A model generated the notes under the pieces. That model searched no databases, had not been told where the DNA came from, and saw only the letters and a list, made by a program, of their open reading frames with translations. Shown here piece after piece: positions 108-16,650 of a DNA stretch of 19,840 nt. Numbering within the stretch: the stretch's first letter is position 1; every line of letters starts with the position of its first letter. This DNA is from Cyanophora paradoxa CCMP329 (Eukaryota > Plantae > Glaucophyta). Location: contig QPMI01000389.1 of NCBI GenBank assembly GCA_004431415.1, positions 1 to 19,840 on the forward strand, written 5' to 3'. Made by a program: the position numbers and the translations under genes.

Positions 108-2467
108 ATGGCGCCCTCCCGCACTCGCCATGCCGCCGGCCGGCCGGTGGCCCCCTCACGTCCTGCCAAGCTAGACAACTGGGACGGCGTTGGCTACATC
201 TGCGTTTCTCCCAGTTAGATTTCCGATTGCTGCACGAGCTGCACTCACGCGCGCTTGCTGTGCGCAGCCAAGACCAATGTTTCTTCGCGTCTCCTGCTTG
301 CGCGGCGGTCCGGGGACGTGGACCAGCTAATTGCGACGTGCACGAGCAAGATAAACGAGTACCCGAGCAATCCGAAGGCGCTGTACATCCGCGCCTCTGC
401 GTATGTGAAGAAGGGGGACCTTGCGGCGGCGGTCGGGGACTACAACCGCCTCCTCGCCCTCGAGCCGGAGGACGTGAACGCTCTATACCACCGCGGCCAG
501 GCCTTTGAGAAGATCGGCGAGCTCGACAAGGCTCGCCCGCCCCCGCCATCGCCGCCCGGGGGCGCCCGTGACGCGCCGGCAGGCCATCGCCGACTTCACG
601 CGCGTGCTGCACCTCGAGCCCAACCACGTCAACGCCGCGTACGCCCGCGCCGCCTGCCAGAACCGCAAGGGAGACTACGAGAGCGCCATCCTCGACTACG
701 ACGCGGTCCGCCGGCCCCCGGCCCCGTCCCGCCGGCACCGACCGAAGGCGCGGGGCAGGCGCTGGCAAAGGACCAGGAGGGTGCGCACCTGCGGAAGGCC
801 CGCACGCCGCGCAGGCTGGCGCAGTCCCCGCTGGAGCCGGCGGTGTCGGCCCGGCCCGAGCCCTTCCTCGCGCGCGCCGCCTCGGCCAGCTCTGCGGGGC
901 CCTCTCCGGCGGCCTCCCCCATCCGTCCCCTGCCGACGTGGAGCTCGAACCCCGGAACTCCCACGTGCGGGCGCCCGGCAGCGTCGCGGGCGGGGAGTGA
1001 CGGGGCGGCAGGGAGGAGGTGGGGCGCGGGGCTGCGGCGCGGCGGGGCGGGGATGCGGCGCGGGCGGCGGAGCTGGTGAAGGAGGAGATTCGGCGCTCCA
1101 TCTCCCGCTCCATCCCTCAGCCCGAGCACCTCTCCTCCTTCCACCCGCCCGCCCGCCCCGCCCCGGGCCCCGCCTCGCCCCCCGAGCGCCCGGCGCCGGC
1201 CTCGGGTCGCGGGGCCTCGGGGGCGCGGGGGAGCGGGGCTAAGGGACCGGAAAAGGCGGAGGAGGCGGGGATGGGGGACGCGCACGAACTGGAGGCCGGC
1301 GCGCGCTCGGCGCGCTCGCTCGGCACCCCCTTGGCGGCGGCGGCAGCGGCAGCGGCGGCGGCGGCGGCGGCGGGGACGGGGCTGACGGCGGACGAGCACC
1401 ACGCGCGGGGGTTCGCGCTGCGGAAGCGGGGGGAGCTGGAGGAGGCGGTGGGGGAGTACAGCCGGGCGCTCGCGCTGGAGCCGGGCCACTTCAAGGCCCT
1501 CTTCAACCGCGGCTTCGCCCTCGACCGCCTCGGCCGCTTCGACGAGGCCATCCGCGTCCGCCCCGCCCCGCCCCGCCCCGCCCCCAGCCCCGGGCCGGCC
1601 TGAGGCGGGGCAGGACTACACGGCGGCGATCCGGGTGGACGGGCGGAACGCGTACGCGTACTACAACCGGGGCATCTCGCACGACCGGCGCGGGGACTAC
1701 GCGGCGGCGATCGAGGACTTCACGGCGGCGATCGAGCTGGAGCCGCAGAACGCCGACTTCTACCACAACCGCGGCTTCTCGTGCCGCAAGGCGGGGCTCT
1801 ACAAGGAGGCGATCGGGGACTACTCGCGGGCCGTGGCGCTGAACGGGCGCCACTTCAAGGCCCACTACAACCGCGCCTTCCTCTACGACAAGCTCGGCCA
1901 GTACTCCTCCGCCGTCGCCGACTACACCGCCGCCCTCCAGGCCCGCCCCGCCCCCGCCCCGCCCCGGCCCCGCGGCTGACGGGGCGCAGATCGACGGGAG
2001 CAACGTCAACGCGTACCACAACCGGGGCAGCGCGTACGACAAGCTGGGGCTGCTGGAGGAGGCGGTCGCGGACTTCACGCGGGTGCTGGAGCGGGACGGG
2101 CGCAACGCGTCGAGCTACAACTCGCGGGGCCTGGTGCTGGACAAGCTGGGGCGCCGGGAGCAGGCCCTCCGCGACTTCTCCACCGCCGTCCAGCTCGAGC
2201 CCCACAACGACATCTTCTACTACAACCGCGGCTTCTGCTACCGCAACATGCCCGCCCGCCCCCGCCCCCCGCGCCCCGCCCCGCCTGAGGCCGCCCCGGC
2301 AGGGAGGAGTACGAGCGGGCGATCGAGGACTACACGCGGGCGATCGAGCTGAACCCGAACAACGCGGCGGCGTACAACAACCGCGGATTCGTGCGCCGCA
2401 AGGCCGCCCTCTACGACCTCGCCATCCAGGGCCCGCCCCGCTCCCCTCCCGCCCCCTCCGCCCCCCG

Positions 2468-2498
<31 letters not shown>

Positions 2499-3256
2499 AG
2501 CCGCCCCCGCAGATTACTCCAGAGCGCTCGAGCTGAACGGCAACAACGTGAAGACGTACAACAACCGGGGCTACAGCTACGCCAAGAAGGGGTCCGCAGC
2601 GCGGGGCGGCCGGCGGAGCGCGGGGCGGCTGGCGTGACGGGGCGCAGGGACTACGAGCGGGCGATCGAGGACTACAACCGGGTGCTGGCGCTGGACCCGC
2701 AGAACGTGCACGCCTACCACAACCGCGGCATCTCCTACGAGAAGAAGGGGTCCGCCCGCCCCGCCCCCCCGCCGCGCCGCGGGGCGCTGAGGCGCCGGGC
2801 AGGGAGTACGCGGCGGCGATTGCGGACTTCTCGACGGTGATCCGGCTGGACCCGCAGAACGCGAACGCCTACTTCAACCGCGGCTCCGCCTACGACTCCG
2901 TCGGGGACTTCGACCGCGCCATCGCCGACTACTCCCGCGCCCTCGACCTCGACATCGCCTCCCGCCAGCGCCACGCCTCCGCCGACGCCCCCGGCCCCCG
3001 CCCCGCCCCGCCCCGCCCGCGGCCCCTCCCCCGCCCCGCGCGGCCCCTCCCCGCCCCGGCCCCGCCCGGCGCCCCCTCCGCTCTGCGACCAGTCTCCGCC
3101 GGCCAGGCGGCGCCAGCTCGCGGGGCTACGCCGCAGTCGGCTGCCCCCGCCCCCGCCACCTTCGCTCCGCAGCAGTACGGCAGCGAGCCCCCGCAGCGGC
3201 CGCCCTCCCGCTCTCGCTCCCCTATGCCCGCAGCGCCCTCCTCCCTCCGCCGATAG
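108..3256 (+). CDS. Multi-exon tetratricopeptide-repeat (TPR) protein
   Basis: Splicing introns 202-267, 531-582, 706-758, 965-1011, 1556-1613, 1941-1989, 2250-2302, 2431-2512, 2592-2647 and 2750-2802 gives one frame from ATG 108 to TAG 3254-3256. It contains many TPR units (e.g. NAYAYYNRGISHDRRGDYAAAIEDFTAAIELEP, NANAYFNRGSAYDSVGDFDRAIADYSRALDLD), an Ala-rich linker and a Pro-rich tail. The first exon and any intron in the tail are less certain. Confidence 0.9.
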
Positions 3257-3477
3257 CAGACCCTCTCCTTGCTCCCCATCCATCCCCCGCTGATTCTGTG
3301 TCCGCGTCCTGAGTTGCTTGCATTTTCCCATGGCCAAGGCACACCCGCGTTTGAGCGCGTACACGCGTACGCAGAGCGCCGCTTATGCGCGTGCATGTTA
3401 CAGATCTATAGCTAGACCCTCGGGCGCAAGCCGCCTCGAGCTCGCGCGCAAAAAAGCGGACGCCAGGCGCCATGGCC

Positions 3478-3482
3478 AAAAA
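3478..3482 (-). terminator. Pol III oligo(T) terminator after tRNA-like copy 1
   Basis: T5 on the minus strand, 8 nt after the discriminator base; a T5 sits at nearly the same spacing in copy 2. Confidence 0.6.
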
Positions 3483-3490
3483 GCATGTGA

Positions 3491-3565
3491 TAGCCCCGCG
3501 AGGACTCGAACCTCGCACCTCCGGCGGGTCGTGGAACCGGCGCTCTACCCATGAGCTACAGGGCT
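3491..3565 (-). tRNA. tRNA-like RNA with enlarged, non-canonical anticodon loop (isotype undetermined)
   Basis: AGCCCTG-TA-GCTC ATGGGTA GAGC-G-CCGGT TCCACGACCC GCCGG-AGGTG-CGAGG TTCGAGT CCTCG-CGGGGCT-A. Acceptor, D and T arms and the A and B boxes are intact; the anticodon loop is 10 nt. Confidence 0.75.
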
Positions 3566-3857
3566 TTCTGTCGGCGGAAGGCGTTCAGACGAATTCGAAG
3601 CTGGATCAGAGCGCAATTTGATCCGGCAAGTGACCGGGTTTGCCCCCCACCCCCCCGGGGACGAACGCCGCCGGGGTGCGCGATTCAAAACTCGCCCAAA
3701 CTACACCGGACCACCAGGGCTTGGAATTGCTGCTTGCTCGTCGCTTAGAGAGCATCTGCATACGACTTGCGGCGTCCGTGCTCAAGGGCGTCAAGGGCGG
3801 CAATTGTCCTGAGCGATTTGCCGCGGGAGTCCGTCTGCGCGAAAAGAGGCTGGAAAG

Positions 3858-6800
3858 ATGAATGTCCCGCGTGACGAGACGTTCTTGTGCGAGCGCCCTG
3901 TGCGCTAGGCGAGCGTTCGCTCTCACACTCACAAAACCCCCACGGGCAGTTTCCGCACAGTGTGTCGTGTGCTTGAGGGGATCGACAAGTCATCCAAGAG
4001 CGCAAATAAGAAGAAAGAGATGACGAGTCTCTTCGACAGCTATGGGGACCGCAAGAACATCTATCCGCTCATTCGCCTCATCCTTCCGCAGGCGCGGAGT
4101 CGCCTCTGCGCTCCGCGCGCTTCTCCTTGTGAATGCCAGCGCGCAGTTCGACTCGCAGCGCGGGGCGATGAACGTGAAGGAGGCGAAGCTGAAGGCCATG
4201 GTCATCCGCGTGTACGGCTTCAAGAAGTCGGACCGGCAGTACAAGATGATCGACGACCACAAGGCCGTCACCGTCGGCACGAAGCGGCGATACGTGCGCG
4301 CCGCTGCCCCGCCGCGCCGCGCCGAGGGCGGCGTGGGAGCGCGAGGCGAGCGCGGGGGCCGGGGCGCAGAAGAAGAACGTGGGGGATCTCGTGGAGGCGA
4401 TCTACGAGGCGATCAAGGACCGGGCGCCGAGCCAGTCCTCCGTGAGCGTCCGCGACGTCAACCAGTTCCTCGACGACCTCGCCACCAAGACCGACCAGCG
4501 CGCCCGGCCCCCGCCCCCGCCCCGCCCCGCGCCGCCCTGAGGCCCCGCGCCGGCAGGGACGAGCGCTTCCCCCTGATGAAGGCCTTCTGCATGCGGGCGA
4601 CGGCCGTCGAGCAGAAATGGCTCTTCAAGATCATCCTCAAGGGTGCCCCGCCCGCCCCCGTCCCCGCCCGCCGCGCGGGGCCCGGGGGCGAGGCCGGGGC
4701 GGGGGCGCACAGACCTGAAGATGGGGATGGGGGAGGACGCGGTGCTGCGGGCGTACCACGAGGATGCGCCGAAGCGGTTCAAGCTGCGGAGCGACCTGAA
4801 GCTGCTGTGCGAGGAGCTCTGGGACCGCAACGAGCGCTTCACGGGCCAGGACATAGAGCCGATGGTCCCCGTCGCCCCCATGCTCTCCGGCCGCACCATC
4901 GACTTCAAGGCCGTGCGCCCCGCCCCGCCGGGGCCGGCCCCGCGCGCGCCGAGCGAGGGGCGGGGGCGGGGGCAGGTGAAGGCGTGGCTGGGGCGGCGGG
5001 AGGGCGGGGTGGTGGTGGAGAGCAAGTACGACGGGGACCGCATCATGATCCACAAGCAGGACGACCGCGTCGAGCTCTACTCCCGGCCCGCCCTCGCCCC
5101 GCCCCGCGCCCCGGGGCGGCGCGGGGCGTGCAGCTGACGGGGCGCATGCGCAGGAACTGCCACGAGGCGAACTTCGAGACGGAGGGCTTCAAGCGGCGGC
5201 TGGCGGAGGCGGGCCTCGTCAAGGCCCGCTCCTGCGTCATCGACGGCGAGATGATGGTCTGGGACAACGTCAACGGCGTCTGGGTGCCCGCCCCCCGCGC
5301 CCCCGCCCCGCCCCGAGCACGCCCGCTCACGCGCCGTGCCGCAGGCCCCCTTCGCCTCCATCCGCGGCAAGGGCGCGCCCGCCTCTCCCGCCCCCCGCCT
5401 CCCCCCGGCGCCTGACGCACGCGGCAGAGAACTTCGACGGCCGGGGCACCCACGAGATGGTCTGTATCCTTTGCGCCGCCGCCGCTGTCGCGCGCCGCCT
5501 GCGCCGCGCCTCTCGGCTGCGGCCTCGACGGGGCGGCGGGCAGACATCGCGTTCGACCTGCTCTACGTGGACGGGGAGTCGCTGCTGGGGCGGCCCCTCC
5601 GCGAGCGCCGCGAGCGCCTCTGGCAGGTCCTCGAGGCCCGCCCCCGCCTCGTCGAGGCGCCGGACGTCGCCTGGGGCGGCCCGGGGCGCCCCAGCGTGGA
5701 CGACGTCGTCGACGCCTTCGACCGCACCGTGCGCGACGGCTTCGAGGGCCTCATCCTCAAGGACGCGGAGAGCGCGTACGAGCCGGCGGACCGGCGCGCC
5801 TGGGCCAAGATCAAGCCCGACTACATGGACGAGACGGCGACAGACCTCGACCTCGTCGTGCTGGGGGCCTACCTGGGGACGGGCGCCCGCTACCGCGGGG
5901 GCGACATCGCCGGCTTCCTCCTGGGGGTGTGCCGCCCCGCGAGCAACCCGCAGGAGCGACCCCGCCAGTTCCTTTCCTTCGCCAAGGTCGGCAGCGGCTT
6001 CAACGCCGCCGAGCTCACCGAGCTCCGCAACCTCCTCAAGCCCCACCTCAAGCCCGCCCCGCCCCCCCCGGCCCCTGCTCCGCCGGCGCCCCCTCGAGCC
6101 CCGCGCAGGCAGTACGACCACCGGAGCCCGCCGCCGGAGTGGTGGGCGGGGCGGGACTGGGCGCCCCGTGCGGACGACCGGCCGCGCTACTGGGTGGACC
6201 CGCGCGAGGCGAATGTGGTGATCGAGGTGCGCGCCTACGAGGTCATCGCCTGCCCGAGCGACCTCTACCGCGCCGAGGCGTACGCCCCCGCGCTCCGCCC
6301 CCCGCGCTCCTTCGCCGGCCCCGCGCCCACGGCGGGCAGCACGCTGCGCTTCCCCCGCTTCCAGCGGGTGCGGCGGGACAAGAGCTGGTGGGAGGCCATG
6401 GACCTCCGCAGTGCGCCCGCCCCGCCGCGCCGCGCCCCGCCGCGCCGCGCCTCGCGCGGGGCCGAGGGGGCGGGGCGGGGCAGTGCTGAAGCGGACGATG
6501 GAGGAGCGGCGGGCGGGGTCTTCCCCGGGACGGCGCGGGAGGCGCTGGATCGGGAGGAGGGCGGCGAGAGCGGAGGCGACGAGGCCGCCGCCGAGGAGGC
6601 CGCCGGCGACGCCGGCACGCAGGGGACCCAGGGCACGCAGGGCGGGGGCGGCGGCGCTGGGCGGGCCGCGGCGGCGAGGCCTCCCGCAAGAAGCGCAAGA
6701 AGGAGGCGGCGCCCCGCGGCCCCACCTCCGTGGTGCGCCCCGCCCGCCTCGCCCCGCCCCGCTCCGCGCCGCGCGGGACGAGCGGGGGCGCAGTCGGAGG

Positions 6801-8066
6801 CGCTGCTGCCGCACCTGCGCCCGACGGACGTCAGCGGCGTCGCGCGCTGCTCCTCCGCCCTCGAGGGCGCCTCCTTCGGTGCGCGCGCCTCGGGCGGCGC
6901 GGGGCGGGAGGGGGGCTCACGCGGCGCAGTGGTGTACGGGCAGCCGCCGGGGGCGAAGGCGGAGGCGGAGCGGCGAGTGGCGGCCCTGGGGGGCAAGCTG
7001 CTCTCGTCGGCGCACGGGCAGCACCCGCCCGACGCCGTCCTCCTCGCCGGCGGTGACGGTGTCCTCAAGGGTCCGCCCTTACGCGTGCCGCGCGCCGCCC
7101 CCCGGGGGGCGAGCGGGGCGCAGTGCCGTCGGTGGTGGGGCTGCTGGAGAGCCTGCGCCGCGGGGCGGCGAACACGCCCGACGTCGACGTGCTCCGGGCC
7201 TCGTGGCTCGAGGAGTGCGCCGCGGAGGGGCGCCGGGTGCCCCCGACGCACGCGCACATCGTGCGGGCCTCGGCGGCCACCGCGGCGCGGCTGCGGGAGG
7301 CCTTCGACCCCTTCGGGGACTCCTACACCGAGCCCACGGGCCCCGACGCCCTCCGCCCCGTGCCCGCCCCGCGCCCGCCCCCTCCTCTGCCGGGCCGCCC
7401 CGAGCGGCGCTGCAGATCCTCGCGCGGGTGCCGGACGACGAGCGGACGGTGCCGGTGGAGGAGCGGGAGGGGCTGGAGGCGCTCGAGGGGGAGTGGCGCA
7501 TGCGGCGGCTGCTCTTCGGGGCGGACTCTCCGCTCGACCAGGAGGCGCGAGATGCGCTTCTCTTCGCCGCCGGCAACTGCTTCCGCCTCCACGTCTTCTA
7601 CTTCCCCCAGTCCGCCCCCGCCCCGCCCCGCCCCGCCCCGCAATGGGCAAACGGGGCGGGGGGGCAGGGAGGGCGTGCGGGGCTCGCAGGTGCGGCTGAC
7701 GAAGGAGGTGGCGCTGGCGCGGGGCGCGCGCGTCGCCCCGCGCCTCTGCCCCGCCGTCACCCACATCGTCGTCGCCCCCGTGCGCCGGCCCCGCCCCGCC
7801 GGCCCCGCTCCCCCGCGAGAGAGCGTGCGCAGGAGGAGGCCGGGGCGGAGGAGGTGCTGGCGGGGCTGGTCGAGGAGCGGCGGGCGCTGCTGCGGGAGGA
7901 CCGCGGCGGGGTCCGCGTGCGCCCCGTGCTGCGCCCCGCGTACGTGCACGAGAGCGCTGAGGCGGCGGACGCGGAGCTCGACGAGGCGGCCCGCCCCGAC
8001 GCCCGCCTCCACACCTACAAGCTCGACCTCCCGGAGCCCGCCCCCGCGCACCCCGCCCCCGCCTAG
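3858..8066 (+). CDS. LIG4: DNA ligase IV (NHEJ ATP-dependent ligase with two C-terminal BRCT domains), about 20 exons
   Basis: Spliced N-terminus MNVPFRTVCRVLEGIDK..RLILPQFDSQRGAMNVKE; motif I ESKYDGDR; III IDGEMMVWD; IIIa YIAFDLLYVDG; IV EGLILKD; V WAKIKPDY; OB-fold DLDLVVLGAYLG..KVGSG..TLRFPRFQRVRRDK; BRCT DVLRASWLEEC; inter-BRCT FDPFGDSY; second BRCT VTHIVV; stop TAG 8064-8066. Two apparent 1-nt indels in the linker near 6515 and 6660. Confidence 0.95.
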
Positions 8067-9946: not shown

Positions 9947-10112
9947 CAGTAGCAGCGGCGAGCCCCCGGACGCCCCCGGATGGCGATCTTAATCGCGCAC
10001 CCCGGCGGGTCTCCGGGGAGGGGGGGGGGGGGGGGCAAACAGGATCACTTGTCCGATCAAATCGATATCGCGCTCTAGTCGATGTTCGTCTGAACGCCTT
10101 CCGCCGACAGAA

Positions 10113-10184
10113 AGCCCCATAGCTCATGGGTAGAGCGCCGGACGCACACACCGGAGGTGCGAGGTTCAAGTCCTCGTGGGGCTA
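10113..10184 (+). tRNA. tRNA-like RNA; nominal CAC anticodon but no U33 and a 31-39 A/A mismatch
   Basis: AGCCCCA-TA-GCTC ATGGGTA GAGC-G-CCGGA CGCACAC ACCGG-AGGTG-CGAGG TTCAAGT CCTCG-TGGGGCT-A; 72-nt cloverleaf with A and B boxes. Confidence 0.75.
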
Positions 10185-10193
10185 GCCGTCCAC

Positions 10194-10198
10194 TTTTT
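10194..10198 (+). terminator. Pol III oligo(T) terminator after tRNA-like copy 2
   Basis: TTTTT 9 nt after the discriminator base. Confidence 0.6.
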
Positions 10199-10767
10199 GC
10201 CGGGTGTCGGCGCGCGGCTCGCGGGGTTTGGCGCGGCGTGCGAGGCCGGCCGGCGGCTCGCGCTATAGCTAGCGCTCGAGCTCGACGGTCTAGATCCAGA
10301 TCTGTGCACGAACACGCGCATGCGCGGCGCTCTTCGTAAACGCGCTCGAACGCGGGCCCCGGGTGTGCCGGTGCCCTCGGCCGCGGGCACGCTCGCAACG
10401 CGCGCCGCGGGCGCACGCGGACGCGTACGGGACCTCCCAATGAAATGAAGAGGGATGAACTGCAGCCAGAGCGCTGCAGTTGCATGGTCGGTCCAAAAGA
10501 AGTCAATTGCAACCCCACCGGCGGTGTCCTTCCCGGGTTTTCCCGAGTGGGAACGCGCCCTCCCTTCCTTTTCCCTTCTAGTATCTATACTCTCTTTCTT
10601 CCCACTTTGACCTTCAAAAGTGGATAAAAATGTATGGTCGGCCGCGCGCGCAACCTTTTGGAAGACGGAGCGCACCCCCGGGCCGGCAGCTAGAGAACTG
10701 CAGCTGCTACCCGCTGCCATATTTTGACAGCCAGCGAGCGCCAGCGCTGCACTTTAGAGGCGGGGCG

Positions 10768-13700
10768 CTAGCCGGCGGCGGGGGCGAGGGCGGGGGCGGG
10801 GGCATCGGCGCGGGCCTCGGCGGCGGCGCGGCGAAGCCAGAGGGGGAGGGCGGGGCCGAGGGCGGCGGCGGCGGCGGCGCAGAGCTCCTCGAGGGGCTCG
10901 AGGACGACCCCGGGGGCGCCCCGGGCGAAGAGCTCGCGGGCGGCGGCGAAGAAGAGGGTCCCCTCGCACGCCGCCCGCGCCGCCGCGTCGGGGAGCTCCC
11001 CCGCGGCGGCGAGCTCGCGCCAGGCCGCCTCGTCGGCGCGCACCGCCTCGAGCCAGAGGGGCGCCAGGTCCTCCCCGGCCCCTCCTCCTCGAGGCGCGCC
11101 CCGCACGAGGCGAAGAGCCCGAGGGCCGCCGAGAGGAGCCGGCGGGGGCCCTCGGGGTCCGCCCCCGCGAGGCGCGCGCAGGCGGCGACGACCCGCGGGG
11201 CGTGGGGAGGGCGTGGATGGGCTCCGCGCGGGCGGCGGCGGCGACCTCGTTGGCGAGGGCGACGGCGCGCACGAGGGCCTCGTCCCCGCGCAGGGCGGCG
11301 AGGGCGGGGGCCCCGCGGGGCCCGCCCCAGGGCGGCGAGCTTGGCGAGGGCGAGCAGCGCCGAGCAGCGGGCGGGGTCGCGGCCCGGGGCGGGGCGGCCG
11401 TGGCGGCGAGGGCGGGGGCGGCCTCGTCGAGGCGGCCGGCCTGGAGGAGGAGGAGGGCGCGGAGGCCGGGGCGCGCGGCGGCGAGGCGCTCGACCTCGCC
11501 GGCGAGCTCGGGCTCGCGCGCCGCCTCCAGCAGCCGGCCCGTGCGGCCCGTGTCGGCGTAGAAGGCGAGGAGCGGGCCCGCGAAGTCGGGGCCCCGCCGG
11601 GCGAGGAGCTCCCGCAGGTGCGCGTCGGCCTGCTCGCGGGAGAGGAGCGGGGCGCCCTCCGAGCCGTCGCTCCCCGCCACGAGCAGCTCCGCGAGGGCCC
11701 GCAGGTCCCCCGTGCGCTCCGCCAGCGCCATCGCCCGCGCCGCGTCGCGGCAGGTGCGCCAGAGGGCGCGGACGAGGGCGGCGCGGGGCTGGGCGACGGG
11801 GGCGCCCTGGAGGGCGAGGGCGTCGAGGAGGACGGCGCCGAGCTCGGCGACGTGCCTCGCGAGCCCCTCGCGGTGCGCCCCGGGGCCCCACCGCCTCCAG
11901 CGCCCGCCCCACCAGCTGCTCCACCGCCCCGTCGCCCTGCGCCCCGCCCCCGCCCTCGCACCCCCGCCCCGCACCCACGCCCCCTGGCACGCGCACCACG
12001 CCGCCCCGCCCACGGCGGCAGGTACTCCGGCGAGGCGCCCGGCGGGTGCCTGGCCGGATGTCAGACGCGGGAAGGGCGGAGCGGGGCGGGGCGGGGCGGG
12101 CGCGGGGCGCACGAGAGCTCGTGGAGGATGGCGGAGGGGCGCAGGAGCGCCAGCGCGAAGCTGCCGCACCGTCGGCGCGGTGGCGGGCGGGGCGGGGCGG
12201 GGCGGGGCGGGGCACCTGTTGGCGGCGAAGGAGGCGGAGGGGGCGAGCTCGGGGCGGGCGTAGGGGTCGCGCTGGAGGCGGGGGAGGAGGGCGGCGAGGG
12301 CGGCCTCGAGGCGCGGGGCCTCGCTGTAGTAGACGTCGAAGGGGGAGACGGAGGCGGCCCAGTGCTCGAGGCGCCCCTGGACCGCCTCCTCGATCGCCTC
12401 CTCCACGAGCCGCAGCGGCGCCTCCGACTGCGAGCGCCCCGCCGCCGCCGCCGCCGCCAGCGTGTTCTGCACCGCCCGCCCCGCCACCGCCGCCCGCAGC
12501 CGCTGCCCCGTCTCCACCAGCCCCCTCCGCGTCTCCTCCGCTGCAGGGCGCTCAGCGGCGGGGCGGGGTCGGGGGCGGGGCGGGTGCGGACCGAGGGGCA
12601 GGGGCCGGAGGGCCTCAGCGAGGGCGTCGTGGCGTGCGAGGCGCTCGCGCAGGGCGCGCTCGAGCATGGGGCTCCCGCGGGGCGCGGGGCCGGCCCCCGC
12701 CCAGGCCTCGTCGGCGGCGGGCCGCTGGTGGGCGAGTGCGGCGTCGAGTGCGGCGGCGGAGCGGGCGAAGGCGGCGGGGTCGGCGTCGAGCTGGCGGCGG
12801 GCGAGGGCGCGGGCCGCCTCGACGCGCCCCTCCACCGCGAGCCGCAGCGCGTGCCCCAGCGCCCCTCCGCCTCCCCGCCCCCCGAACGAGGAGGCCGAGG
12901 GGAGGCCGGGGCGGGGGCGCGGGGGAGGGGGAGGGGGCGGCGGAGGGCGCGCGGGGCTCCTCGTAGAGGGAGGCGGCGCGCAGGAGGCCGCGGCGGGAGT
13001 GGAGGAGGGCGGGGCCGGCGCCCCCGGGGAGGGGCCCCGCCGCGAGGAAGGCGCCGGGCGCGCGGGGAGGAGCTCGCCGTCGGGGAGGACGCAGCACGAG
13101 GGGAGCAGCACGAAGGGCCGCGCCTCGGTCCCCGCCCGCCCCGCCACCAGCTGCAGCCGCGCCCCGGGCAGCTCCTCCGCCGGCAGCGCCCCCGCGGGGA
13201 GGTCGCGGCACCAGAGGGCGGCCCCCGGGGGCGGGAGGGAGCCGACGGCGGCGGGGTCGAGGGCGTGGAGGGAGAGGAGGGCTGGCCCGGGGGCCTCCAG
13301 CGCGTGCACGGCGAGCACGTGCAGCGCGCCCCCGACGAGCGCCGCGTCCGCCACCTGCACCGACGCCCACCGCCCCGCGTACTCCCCCGGCACCTCCGCC
13401 CGCAGCCGCGCTGCCAGGGGCGACTCCCCCGCGAACTGCGGCCGCCGCGAGCTCGGCGGGGGCGGGGAGGGAGGCGGGGGCGGGGACGCACGCGGGCGGG
13501 GCGTCGAGGCCGACGGTGTAGCGCTCGACGGTGGCCGCCTCGTCGCCCTTGAAGCAGAGCGCCTGCCCCCGCCCCGCCCGTCCGGCCCGCCGCGAGCGCC
13601 GCGACGGGCGAGGCCTGCGCGGGGCCGCGGCGGCCGCGGCGGAGGCTGCCGAGGAGGGCGCTGACGATGCCGGCGTGGCGGGCGAGGCGGGTCTGCTGGA

Positions 13701-14358
13701 GGGGCTGGAAGGGGTCGGCGGGGACGGCGAGCTGGATGAGGGCCCCGTCGCTGCACGCCACCAGCGCCCCCGACGGGAACCCCGCCACGCACTCCACCGT
13801 CGCCGACGCCCCCAGCTCCACGCTCCCGTCCTCGTACGAGAAGCCCGCGCGCAGCGGCCTGCCGCCCCTCAGCCGCCCTGCTCCCGCCAACGCGCGAGGA
13901 GCGCGCGTACCGCCGGAACAGGCGGAAGGTTCCTGCGGCCGTACAGGCGAGCATACCGAAGTCCGCTGCGCTCGAGCCGAGCGGGATTGTGGTGATTCGG
14001 CGATTGTAGCTGCGCGGGTGTGAGCGGCTGCGCGTGCAGTTGCCGAGCGAGCGCGGCGCGAGGCGCAGTCCCATCTCGCCATTCAAGCCGCCTCCCGTCT
14101 GCGCAAAGCGCACCTGCCTGCGTCTTCGCCCGGAAGCTCGTGGCTCACGACACTCTGCTGACCAGCGAGCGCTTTCCAGATGAACAGGCGGGGCGGTCCT
14201 ACAGATGAAGCTGCTGCTAGGAAGACATATGATGCAGACGTCTCCGGCGTGACGAAACCGCCGCACACGGCCGCATCGCCGAGAGTTGCGGCTACCGCCT
14301 CGCGCACGCTTGGAGGCAAGTCTGACGCTTGGACAACGTCGTAATGTGAGAGCTCCAT
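10768..14358 (-). CDS. NUP133: Nuclear pore complex protein Nup133, multi-exon
   Basis: Collinear peptides resembling Nup133 as recalled: MELSHYDVVQASDLPPSVREAV..RLFIWK (propeller start), ERALRERLARHDALAEAL, ETRRGLVETGQRLRAAV, SPFDVYYSEAPRLE, AMALAERTGDLRALAEL, FAGPLLAFYADTGRTGRLL, ALLALAKLAAL, LAPLWLEAVRADEAAW; stop at 10768-10770. Exon boundaries not fully traced. Confidence 0.85.
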
Positions 14359-14450: not shown

Positions 14451-16389
14451 ATGTTCTCCGCCCTCGGACGTGCGGCACGGGTGCGTCTTGCGATCCGGCT
14501 CGACCCTCCGCGGACGACGGGCGCCATAGCGGGTTGGCGGGCCGAATGGCGTAAGAGACGCCGCCCGGGGATCCCGTGGCGCCAAAGCCGGGCTCGCGAC
14601 CGGTATCGGGAGTACGCTGACGTCCCGGTCCTTTCCGTATGCTTTCTCGCAGTCCCTGCGCCCCGCCGGCGGCCTCAACATGCAGGCCGTCCGCCGGCTG
14701 AACCTGCACGAGCACGAGAGCCAGGAGCTCATGCGGGATTTCGGCATCAAAGTGCCGAAGGGCCAGGTCGCGAAGACGCCCGAGGAGGCGGAGAAGGCGG
14801 CCAAAGAGCTCAGTGCGCCCCACGCAATCTGCCCCACACGGGCCCCGACGGCCGACCGCGGACGCGTACGCAGACGTGCAGGACGTGGTCGTGAAGGCGC
14901 AAGTGCTGGCCGGCGGGCGTGGCCTCGGCAAGTTCACCAACGGCTTCCAGGGCGGCGTCCACATCTGCACGGAGTGCGGGGGGCGGAGGGGGCGGGGCGA
15001 GGGGCGGCGTGGCCGACGCGGGGCGGCGCAGGGCGAAGGACGCGAGGGAGATCGCGTCGAAGATGCTGGGCCAGCGGCTGGTGACGAAGCAGACGGGGGC
15101 GGAGGGGCGGCCGTGCAACAAGGTGTACGTCACGGAGCGCGTCTACCTGCGCAAGGAGTCCTACTTCGCGATCCTCATGGACCGCAAGCACGGCGGGCCC
15201 GTCCTCGTCGGCAGGCGCGGCCCCCGCCCCGCCGCCCCCGCCGCCCCTGAGGGCGCCCGGCAGCCCGCGCGGCGGCGTGGACATCGAGGGCGTCGCGGCG
15301 GCCACCCCGCACCTCATCTTCACCGTACGCGCCACGCGCTGCGGGCGGCGGCGGGCGGGTCCGGGGCGAGCGGGGCGGCGGGGCGCAGGAGCCGGTGGAC
15401 ATCACGAAGGGCCCGTCGAAGGAGCAGACGCTGCGCCTCGCCAAGGCCATGGGTTTCAGCGCCGCCTGCGTCCCCGCCGCCCAGGAGCAGATCGAGAAGC
15501 TCTACGCCCTCTTCATCAAGGTCCGCCCCGCCCCCGCCCCGCCCCGCGCCGCCCCCGCGGGCGTCGAGGCGGCGCGCAGTCGGACGCGACGCTGGTGGAG
15601 ATCAACCCGTTCGCTGAGACGCCCACCGGCGACGGTGCCCCCCGCCCGCCCCTGGACGCAGGGGCCGAACGCGGGGGCTGACGCGCGGGGGGCAGTACTG
15701 TGTGTGGACGCGAAGCTGAACTTCGACGACAACGCCGGCTTCCGGCAGAAGGAGGTCTTCGCGCGGCGGGACACCTCGCAGGAGGACGCCCGCGAGGTGC
15801 AGGCCGCCGAATTCGACCTCAACTACATCGGCCTGGACGGCAACATCGGGTGCCTCGTCAACGGGGCCGGCCTCGCGATGGCGACGATGGACATCATCAA
15901 GCTCTACGGCGGGAGCCCGGCGAACTTCCTCGACGTCGGGGGCGGCGCGAACGCGAAGCAGGTGACCGAGGCCTTCAAGATCCTCAACGCCGACCCCCGC
16001 GTCCAGGCCATCCTCGTCAACGTGCCCGCCCCGCCCCGCCCGCCCGCAGCCGCCGACGCGGCGGGGCGGGCGGGGGCCGGCAGATCTTCGGGGCATCATG
16101 CGGTGCGACATCATCGCGCAGGGGATCATCGAGGCCGCCTCCCAGGTCAAGATGCGCATCCCATCGTCGTCCGCCTCCAGGGCCCGCCCCCGCCCCGCCC
16201 CGCCCCGCGGCGGCGGCCAACTGGGGGCGCAGGGACGAACGTGGAGGCGGCGCGGGAGATGATCGGGAAGAGCAGCGTGCCGCTGGTGACCGAGTCGGAC
16301 CTGGACAAGGCGGCGCAGCTCTCCGTCGCCTCGCCGACATCCAGGCCAAGGCCGACGCCGCAGGCATCAAGGTCGCCTTCTCCCGGTAG
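14451..16389 (+). CDS. sucC: Succinyl-CoA ligase beta subunit, mitochondrial (ADP- vs GDP-forming not determined)
   Basis: Presequence-like [25 protein letters not shown], then [115 protein letters not shown]. Three 1-nt deletions near 16090, 16160 and 16327 must be corrected to keep the frame. Confidence 0.96.
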
Positions 16390-16650
16390 CCCCCTGGCTC
16401 CCCACCCCGCGCCGGCCCCCCCAGCCCGCCTCCCCCTGTAATATTGCACTTCTTTCCTTTCTCTCGGCGCTGTCTTTCTGGGGGGGGAAGGAGGCGGGGG
16501 GTGGGGAGGGGGCAAGGACCGGGTACGAGGGCGAACGCTTTGACGCACCAACTGACGCCGCCATGGCCTTCGTGCCCGCTGGCGCCGGCTCCGCACCGCG
16601 CGTCCAGCGCTGGACGCTCACCGCTCACCCGGTCAGGCGCTGCGATCGCG

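Follow-up and report, generated by a model that had tools for sequence, protein, structure and literature searches.

We identified, in the 19,840 nucleotides of Cyanophora paradoxa DNA analyzed here (the window), two members of a small gene family that may have kept the tRNA shape and given up the decoding loop. The explanation that we favor, at a probability of about one half, is that the family (three copies could be read, and there are probably four) descends from a tRNA-Val(CAC) gene, has an intact tRNA shape of the polymerase III type and has lost the architecture of the decoding loop. Part of this same explanation, and held at the same even odds, is that purifying selection has kept the body of the gene, with an anticodon loop that lacks decoding architecture. 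The window has a mean GC content of 73% (61-84% per kb) and looks like a stretch of a eukaryotic nuclear genome with short, GC-rich introns.

ARAGORN and Rfam each found exactly two tRNA-type elements in the whole window. Copy 1 (75 nt) occupies positions 3491-3565 on the minus strand, and copy 2, at the canonical length of 72 nt, occupies positions 10113-10184 on the plus strand. Both score above the Rfam gathering score for tRNA (49.3 and 51.4 bits, respectively, against 29). ARAGORN labeled copy 1 as tRNA-??? with (ccac) and copy 2 as tRNA-Val(cac), the latter with an A.A mismatch at 31-39 and a G at position 33. The cloverleaf is the minimum-energy fold of both copies, and each has the 7-bp acceptor stem, the D arm, the T arm and the conserved nucleotides of the elbow. 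All 20 stem pairs of the body are standard in the two copies. The pair A1-U72, previously read from the sequence in both, was confirmed and is accompanied in each by the discriminator A73. Also present in both are U8, A14, G18, G19, G26, A44, G45, T54, T55, C56 and A58; C61 is present as well, and the Levitt pair is unusual in joining U15 with G48.

Both copies have the layout of a type 2 polymerase III gene, with internal A and B boxes and a run of at least four T residues shortly 3' of the gene. TAGCTCATGGG forms the A box, and the B box, at standard spacing from it, reads GGTTCGAGTCC in copy 1 and GGTTCAAGTCC in copy 2. Read from the sequence, a T5 run of the polymerase III terminator type lies at +9 to +13 after copy 1 (3478-3482, minus strand) and at +10 to +14 after copy 2 (10194-10198, plus strand). 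These runs stand at a matching distance although the trailers of the two genes no longer align. A second T run (T6) follows copy 1 at 3450-3455, and a terminator-like site with its T run occupies 3459-3471.

The anticodon arms depart from this regularity. In copy 1, 12 nt (TTCCACGACCCG / UUCCACGACCCG; 3525-3536, minus strand) stand between the CCGG strands at 3537-3540 and 3521-3524 and form a loop of 10 nt on a 5-bp stem or of 12 nt on 4 bp. The corresponding 9 nt of copy 2 (ACGCACACA; 10142-10150, plus strand) comprise A31, the loop C G CAC A C and A39, which gives a 7-nt loop with A37 but with G33 and the A.A mismatch. This A.A mismatch affects the fifth pair of the anticodon stem (31-39); copy 1 has U.G there, and the third copy, described below, has A.G. 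With C (copy 1) and G (copy 2) at position 33, both lack U33 in the standard register; the claim of an earlier, sequence-only reading that a proper U33 loop is missing from both therefore holds. A canonical decoding loop, defined by a length of 7 nt, U33, a purine at 37 and a 5-bp stem, is found in neither copy.

The sequence-only reading also held that the two loops are unrelated and of unequal length. They are of unequal length (12 versus 9 nt), but they share CAC at the standard positions 34-36 when counted from the 5' stem strand, as does the third copy, and MAFFT aligns copies 1 and 2 in this way. A tandem duplication, CCG-CCG, in the 3' strand of copy 1 is one way to read its 3 extra nt. 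With this possible duplication removed, 6 of the 9 loop columns differ, and the three identical columns are exactly the anticodon CAC. The chance that three identical columns out of nine are those of the anticodon is 1/84 (P = 0.012), and the chance of identity at three fixed columns, estimated from the composition of the loops, is 0.037. With CAC as the only shared loop columns and A73 kept, the claim that the anticodon is free of selection could not be sustained. The loss concerns the architecture of the loop (U33, 7 nt) and not the triplet. The arm of copy 2 (CCGGA-CGCACAC-ACCGG) differs from a canonical Val(CAC) arm by two substitutions, namely U33 to G and a change on one side of pair 31-39. 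The main identity elements of valine tRNAs are A35, C36 and A73, with G45 and G20 as minor elements (PMC9976931). A35, C36, A73 and the minor element G45 are found in all three copies; position 20 is U by the numbering used.

Both loop sequences were recovered letter for letter in contigs (not raw reads) of public sequencing runs. Contigs of a DNA run (X1), which may derive from the assembled strain itself, contain copy 1 with 0 differences and the exact loop of copy 2. The latter is also exact in contigs of two probable RNA runs (X15 and X17) from other studies. The unusual loops are therefore no assembly error. Nor do they conceal an intron: the ARAGORN intron search gave no model for either copy, and a spliced intron needs more than 3 extra nt. 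At lowered stringency, ARAGORN returned only spurious giant-intron calls elsewhere. About 5% of the tRNA genes of Cyanophora paradoxa carry introns, and all of these are canonical, according to a 2026 review (PMC13578239).

Outside the loop, the alignment of copies 1 and 2 revealed differences at 4/63 positions (6, 7, 57 and 66), just as the sequence-only reading had it, and every stem pair is kept. Position 6 is U in copy 1 and C in copy 2, making pair 6-67 U.G in the former and C-G in the latter; pair 7-66 is G-C in copy 1 and A-U in copy 2; and position 57 is G in copy 1 and A in copy 2. All of these differences are transitions, and they fall in three CpG dinucleotides (C6-G7, C56-G57 and C66-G67). 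When four random substitutions were drawn under a uniform null, all pairs were kept and a two-sided change was included in 0.6% of trials; the same outcome was obtained in 2.9% of trials with transitions only. Under a null of CpG transitions, 19% of trials left all pairs intact, and 6% did so with one two-sided change. Because all body differences are CpG transitions, the preservation of pairs is not significant under this mutation-biased null. The compensatory double change that had been proposed at 7-66 is thus real as a G-C versus A-U difference and consists of two CpG transitions, with G.U as the step between them. The pattern is suggestive, but its probability under the CpG null (P about 0.06) does not reach significance.

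The comparison of the gene bodies with their surroundings speaks to constraint on the tRNA shape. Segment-wise alignment with shuffles placed each copy inside a duplicated unit, one at 3301-3690 around copy 1 (minus strand, about -125 to +190) and the other at 9988-10374 around copy 2 (plus strand), inverted relative to the first. Homology between the units extends over about 320 nt, with 72-87% identity in alignable islands, many indels and a trailer that can hardly be aligned; the alignable flanks diverge by 20-30%. Set against this flank divergence, 4/63 differences in the body give P values between 0.002 and 4e-6. The proposed conservation of the tRNA body (acceptor stem and elbow) is borne out accordingly, the body changing far more slowly than its flanks (P of 0.002 or less). 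Outside the A and B boxes the body differs at 3/41 positions (P = 0.004 at 25% divergence, and 0.024 to 0.0004 over the range of 20-30%). Conservation of these 41 non-box positions means that the constraint reaches beyond the promoter boxes. The loop, by comparison, changes at or above the flank rate (6/9 columns plus a 3-nt indel). Transcribed tRNA genes that are under purifying selection have been described as bearing a signature in which the body is conserved and the flanks are diverged (PMC13010820), and it is this signature that the sequences of copies 1 and 2 carry, except in the loop.

One part of the flanks does not follow the signature. The 28-nt leaders of copy 1 (3566-3593, minus strand) and copy 2 (10085-10112, plus strand) are identical at 28/28 positions (z = 16.5 versus shuffles), which one would not expect next to a transcribed tRNA gene. 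They are part of an inverted repeat (I1) of 57 nt and 96% identity that covers the leader and the 5' half of the tRNA-like gene. Further upstream, a block at -122 to -105 (3668-3685 and 9991-10008 in the window) is identical at 18/18 positions, and downstream a block at +101 to +170 has 87% identity (z = 11.9). The conserved islands of unit 1 include a TCACTTGCCGGATCAAAT motif, and the upstream motif TCACTTG..GATCAAAT is conserved. About 80-95 nt upstream of the genes there is also a G homopolymer followed by CAAAC, with 16 G in copy 2 (10020-10035) and G7 T G6 in copy 1 (3643-3656). The reverse complement of the 18/18 block resembles tRNA positions 38-56 (17/20), and a downstream block, GCGGCGCTCT (about 3373-3384 and 10324-10333), is complementary to tRNA positions 21-30. 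In long folds these blocks pair with the tRNA part, but at z-scores of -1.2 and -0.7, and this pairing is possibly due to chance. Since the tRNA part does not stand alone but belongs to a duplicated unit (about 320 nt) whose leader is 28/28 identical, gene conversion and functions at the level of DNA have to be weighed as rival explanations.

The family extends beyond the window. By matching contigs of DNA run X1 to positions 3280-3730 at 80% likeness, we found a third copy on other contigs of the run, elsewhere in the genome and with different flanks. The body of this copy has C6-G67 and G7-C66, a state from which, judging by the sequences, both copy 1 (U6) and copy 2 (A7, U66 and A57) can be derived. 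The five body differences among the three copies all keep their pairs. The loop of the third copy (ATCCACGACCCG) is one letter from that of copy 1, and its trailer is like that of copy 1 for 34 nt, with two 1-nt gaps. Upstream, most of the leader has been lost and the motif TCACTTGCCGGATC has been kept. Furthermore, the summed depths require one unlisted 32-nt piece (3537-3568) of depth 150 that carries the C6/A7 of copy 2 and has its branch points at the first base of the loop and at -4. This piece is probably a fourth member of the family, and it could be an ordinary tRNA-Val(CAC) gene. The comparison draws on three readable copies and amounts, in effect, to one deep comparison.

Several of these observations could also come from plain tRNA-Val(CAC) pseudogenes in slow decay, the bodies of which were homogenized by recent gene conversion, either between the nearby inverted copies or from a functional paralogue, with only the hypermutable CpG sites having changed since. 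This origin would account for body differences that are all CpG transitions and for the defective loops of both copies. The 57-nt inverted repeat, at 96% over leader and 5' half, is a possible conversion tract, and the further copy with the 5' half of copy 2 suggested by the depth accounting could be a functional donor. A conversion tract over both halves of the gene should, however, have homogenized the 9-12 nt loop too, and two separate tracts ending exactly at the borders of the stem are unlikely. The dispersed third copy, with its different flanks and a body equal to the inferred ancestor, and the intact T5 run and boxes of all copies also argue against decay. We consider conversion among pseudogenes unlikely, with a chance of somewhat better than one in five.

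The position of the genes bears on a second alternative. The tRNA-like genes are inverted, point outward and lie about 6.5 kb apart, with an ATP-dependent DNA ligase gene between them (4042-7700, plus strand; adenylation and C-terminal domains at 5336-7699, E = 1e-15 and 6e-11). To the right of the ligase gene there is a gene with a CoA-ligase domain (15395-16441, plus strand). Each faces the 3' end of a convergent neighbor, which is a plus-strand TPR-repeat gene for copy 1 and, for copy 2, a minus-strand gene at 10754-14266, where GC3 is up to 1.0. The TPR-repeat gene (1454-2940, plus strand) has at least 10 repeats of 102 nt (34 residues) with TPR-like spacing. It is broken by CCCCG-rich stretches that resemble short introns, and a run of about 30 C lies at 2464-2497; a Pfam search with one ORF piece of this gene gave no match. 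Because both tRNA-like genes are convergent with protein genes, the mRNAs of the latter may end at the conserved leader. Contigs of about 500 nt from probable RNA runs cross the tRNA-like genes at 10078-10600 on the side of copy 2 and at 3181-3571 on the side of copy 1, covering copy 2 from -35 or -19 to about +410. They stem from runs of the mRNA type and give neither the strand nor true RNA ends, and over copy 2 they are probably antisense 3' UTR of the neighbor and not support for a small RNA.

Such an arrangement would suit a role for the DNA and not for the RNA, with the genes bound by TFIIIC and TFIIIB as a boundary or acting as a roadblock to polymerase II at convergent gene ends, the RNA itself being irrelevant. 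Each copy faces the 3' end of a convergent gene, together the copies bracket the DNA ligase gene in inverted orientation, and their leaders are perfectly conserved. The RNA-run contigs, moreover, end 19-35 nt upstream of copy 2, about where TFIIIB is expected. Yet these contigs reveal no strand and no true RNA ends, and the third copy is without most of the leader. The conservation of the non-box positions (3/41, P = 0.004) and the pairing of the stems also weigh against a role of the DNA, as a protein-binding site alone needs neither. We regard a function of the DNA by itself as doubtful, and as less probable than conversion among pseudogenes.

The least probable explanation, in our estimate, is that copy 2 at least works as an odd tRNA-Val(CAC) and that copies 1 and 3 might be quadruplet or otherwise unusual decoders: copy 2 has the canonical length, a 7-nt loop, CAC, A37 and A73, the very high GC3 (up to 1.0) implies heavy use of GUG/GUC codons, and an alternative ARAGORN fold gives copies 1 and 3 an 8-nt loop (UU-CCAC-GA) with U33, in copy 1 with a purine after the anticodon, but copy 2 has G33 in place of the near-universal U33 and A.A at 31-39, copy 1 has a loop of 10-12 nt, and ARAGORN has no intron solution in an alga in which about 5% of tRNA genes have introns, all canonical (PMC13578239). 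The alternative fold of copy 1 has a C.C mismatch, no position 26 and an 8-nt variable region and is not the minimum-energy structure; we rejected the quadruplet-anticodon fold as its main fold on the mismatch, the missing position and the energy.

Returning to the explanation that we favor, a family with an intact tRNA shape and a lost decoding loop, expression would follow the route of ordinary tRNA genes. TFIIIC and TFIIIB would bind the intact A and B boxes, and polymerase III would initiate in the leader and terminate at the T5 run 9-14 nt past the gene. The ends of the transcript would then be trimmed by RNase P and RNase Z and CCA would be added. The predicted RNA is L-shaped. Its acceptor stem, D arm, T arm and elbow would be normal, and its anticodon arm would consist of a 4-5 bp stem and a 7-12 nt loop without U33. 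Such an RNA would be a poor or useless decoder because its anticodon loop lacks U33 and the standard architecture. Recognition by valyl-tRNA synthetase may still occur, because CAC (A35 and C36), A73 and G45 have been kept. Charging without decoding is, on these grounds, conceivable. The sequences, the three copies, the contrast in conservation of the body with the loop and flanks, and the intact boxes and terminators are observations, whereas transcription, processing, charging and any role of the RNA are inferences. One could go further and see in the family an endogenous, selected tRNA mimic that does not decode, still receives valine from valyl-tRNA synthetase and has a role outside the ribosome, as a cellular counterpart of the viral TLS-Val. 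We put the chances of this proposal at only slightly better than those of a working tRNA; the mimic might serve, for example, as a decoy for the synthetase, as a decoy for a sensor of uncharged tRNA or as an aminoacyl donor.

Cyanophora paradoxa is among the species of PlantRNA 2.0, in which a 'tRNA-like' class takes in pseudogenes or highly divergent tRNAs of unknown function (10.1101/2021.12.21.473619). Copies 1 and 2 agree with this class in being found by tRNA finders and in having a defect that bars their assignment as true tRNAs, and their family, though small, is real and belongs to a known kind of tRNA-like genes. The cloverleaf body, the internal promoter boxes and the defect that prevents a normal isotype call are common to the class and to the copies described here. 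In contrast with the class, the body is far less diverged than the flanks over three dispersed copies, and the defect is confined to the loop, with the anticodon triplet kept. A likeness also exists to the viral TLS-Val (e.g., that of TYMV) as non-decoding tRNA mimics with a CAC-type anticodon. The viral elements keep this anticodon, and usually an A discriminator, because ValRS reads them. However, they have a pseudoknotted acceptor and sit at the 3' end of an RNA genome, whereas the Cyanophora copies have a regular 7-bp acceptor helix in a stand-alone nuclear gene, and their valylation is putative.

Similarity to mascRNA and MEN-beta lies in the tRNA-shaped fold and the reduced anticodon arm; mascRNA is cut by RNase P and RNase Z and is a substrate of the CCA enzyme. 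The Rfam mascRNA model (RF01684) matched our copies at 26.4 and 22.1 bits, below its gathering score of 42.5. Unlike mascRNA, both have a complete D arm, boxes of their own and a T5 terminator, and there is no sign of a long upstream RNA on their own strand. Mobile origins were considered as well, since tRNA-derived SINEs and Helenus-type LTR elements likewise contain tRNA-derived sequence and polymerase III boxes and occur in several copies. A tRNA-derived SINE was rejected on the grounds that the homology begins about 125 nt upstream of the tRNA part, the terminator is directly 3', there is no tail and only 3-4 copies exist. A mobile element was rejected in that the two units share no LTR, terminal inverted repeat or target-site duplication.

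Beyond tRNA, permissive Rfam searches with the two units and with the window as a whole yielded only sub-threshold mascRNA and antisense matches. Pattern scans of metagenome contigs, prokaryote genomes and viral contigs returned no relatives; their matches were ordinary tRNAs and tRNA-like sets without relation to the family, and a phage tRNA-Ile was the one viral match. A look-up of other assemblies through the neighboring ORFs gave no match. The scans did bring up, as an observation in its own right, a set of tRNA-like genes in Alphaproteobacteria (Mesorhizobium, Shinella, Hyphomicrobiaceae and Metarhizobium) with a nearly constant body and G3.U70, the alanine mark. Most of them have an encoded CCA end. 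Between their CCGG strands, 6-10 wholly variable nt replace the anticodon loop, which is the Cyanophora pattern in bacteria. The set comprises loci L056, L061-L064, L070, L071, L073, L077, L079, L080, L084, L085 and L087 from prokaryote genomes, and loci of the same type from metagenomes (L002, L005, L012, L015, L022, L035, L037, L051 and L052).

If the copies are neither transcribed nor selected, they are ordinary decaying tRNA genes. Their main message would then be a warning that, in very GC-rich genomes, 'compensatory' changes say little about RNA structure when they fall at CpG sites. If the RNA is made and selected, on the other hand, the family would be a clean natural case in which the tRNA shape and the synthetase identity have been kept and decoding has been given up. 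Such a case would suggest that an early-branching alga uses tRNA-shaped RNA for something other than translation.
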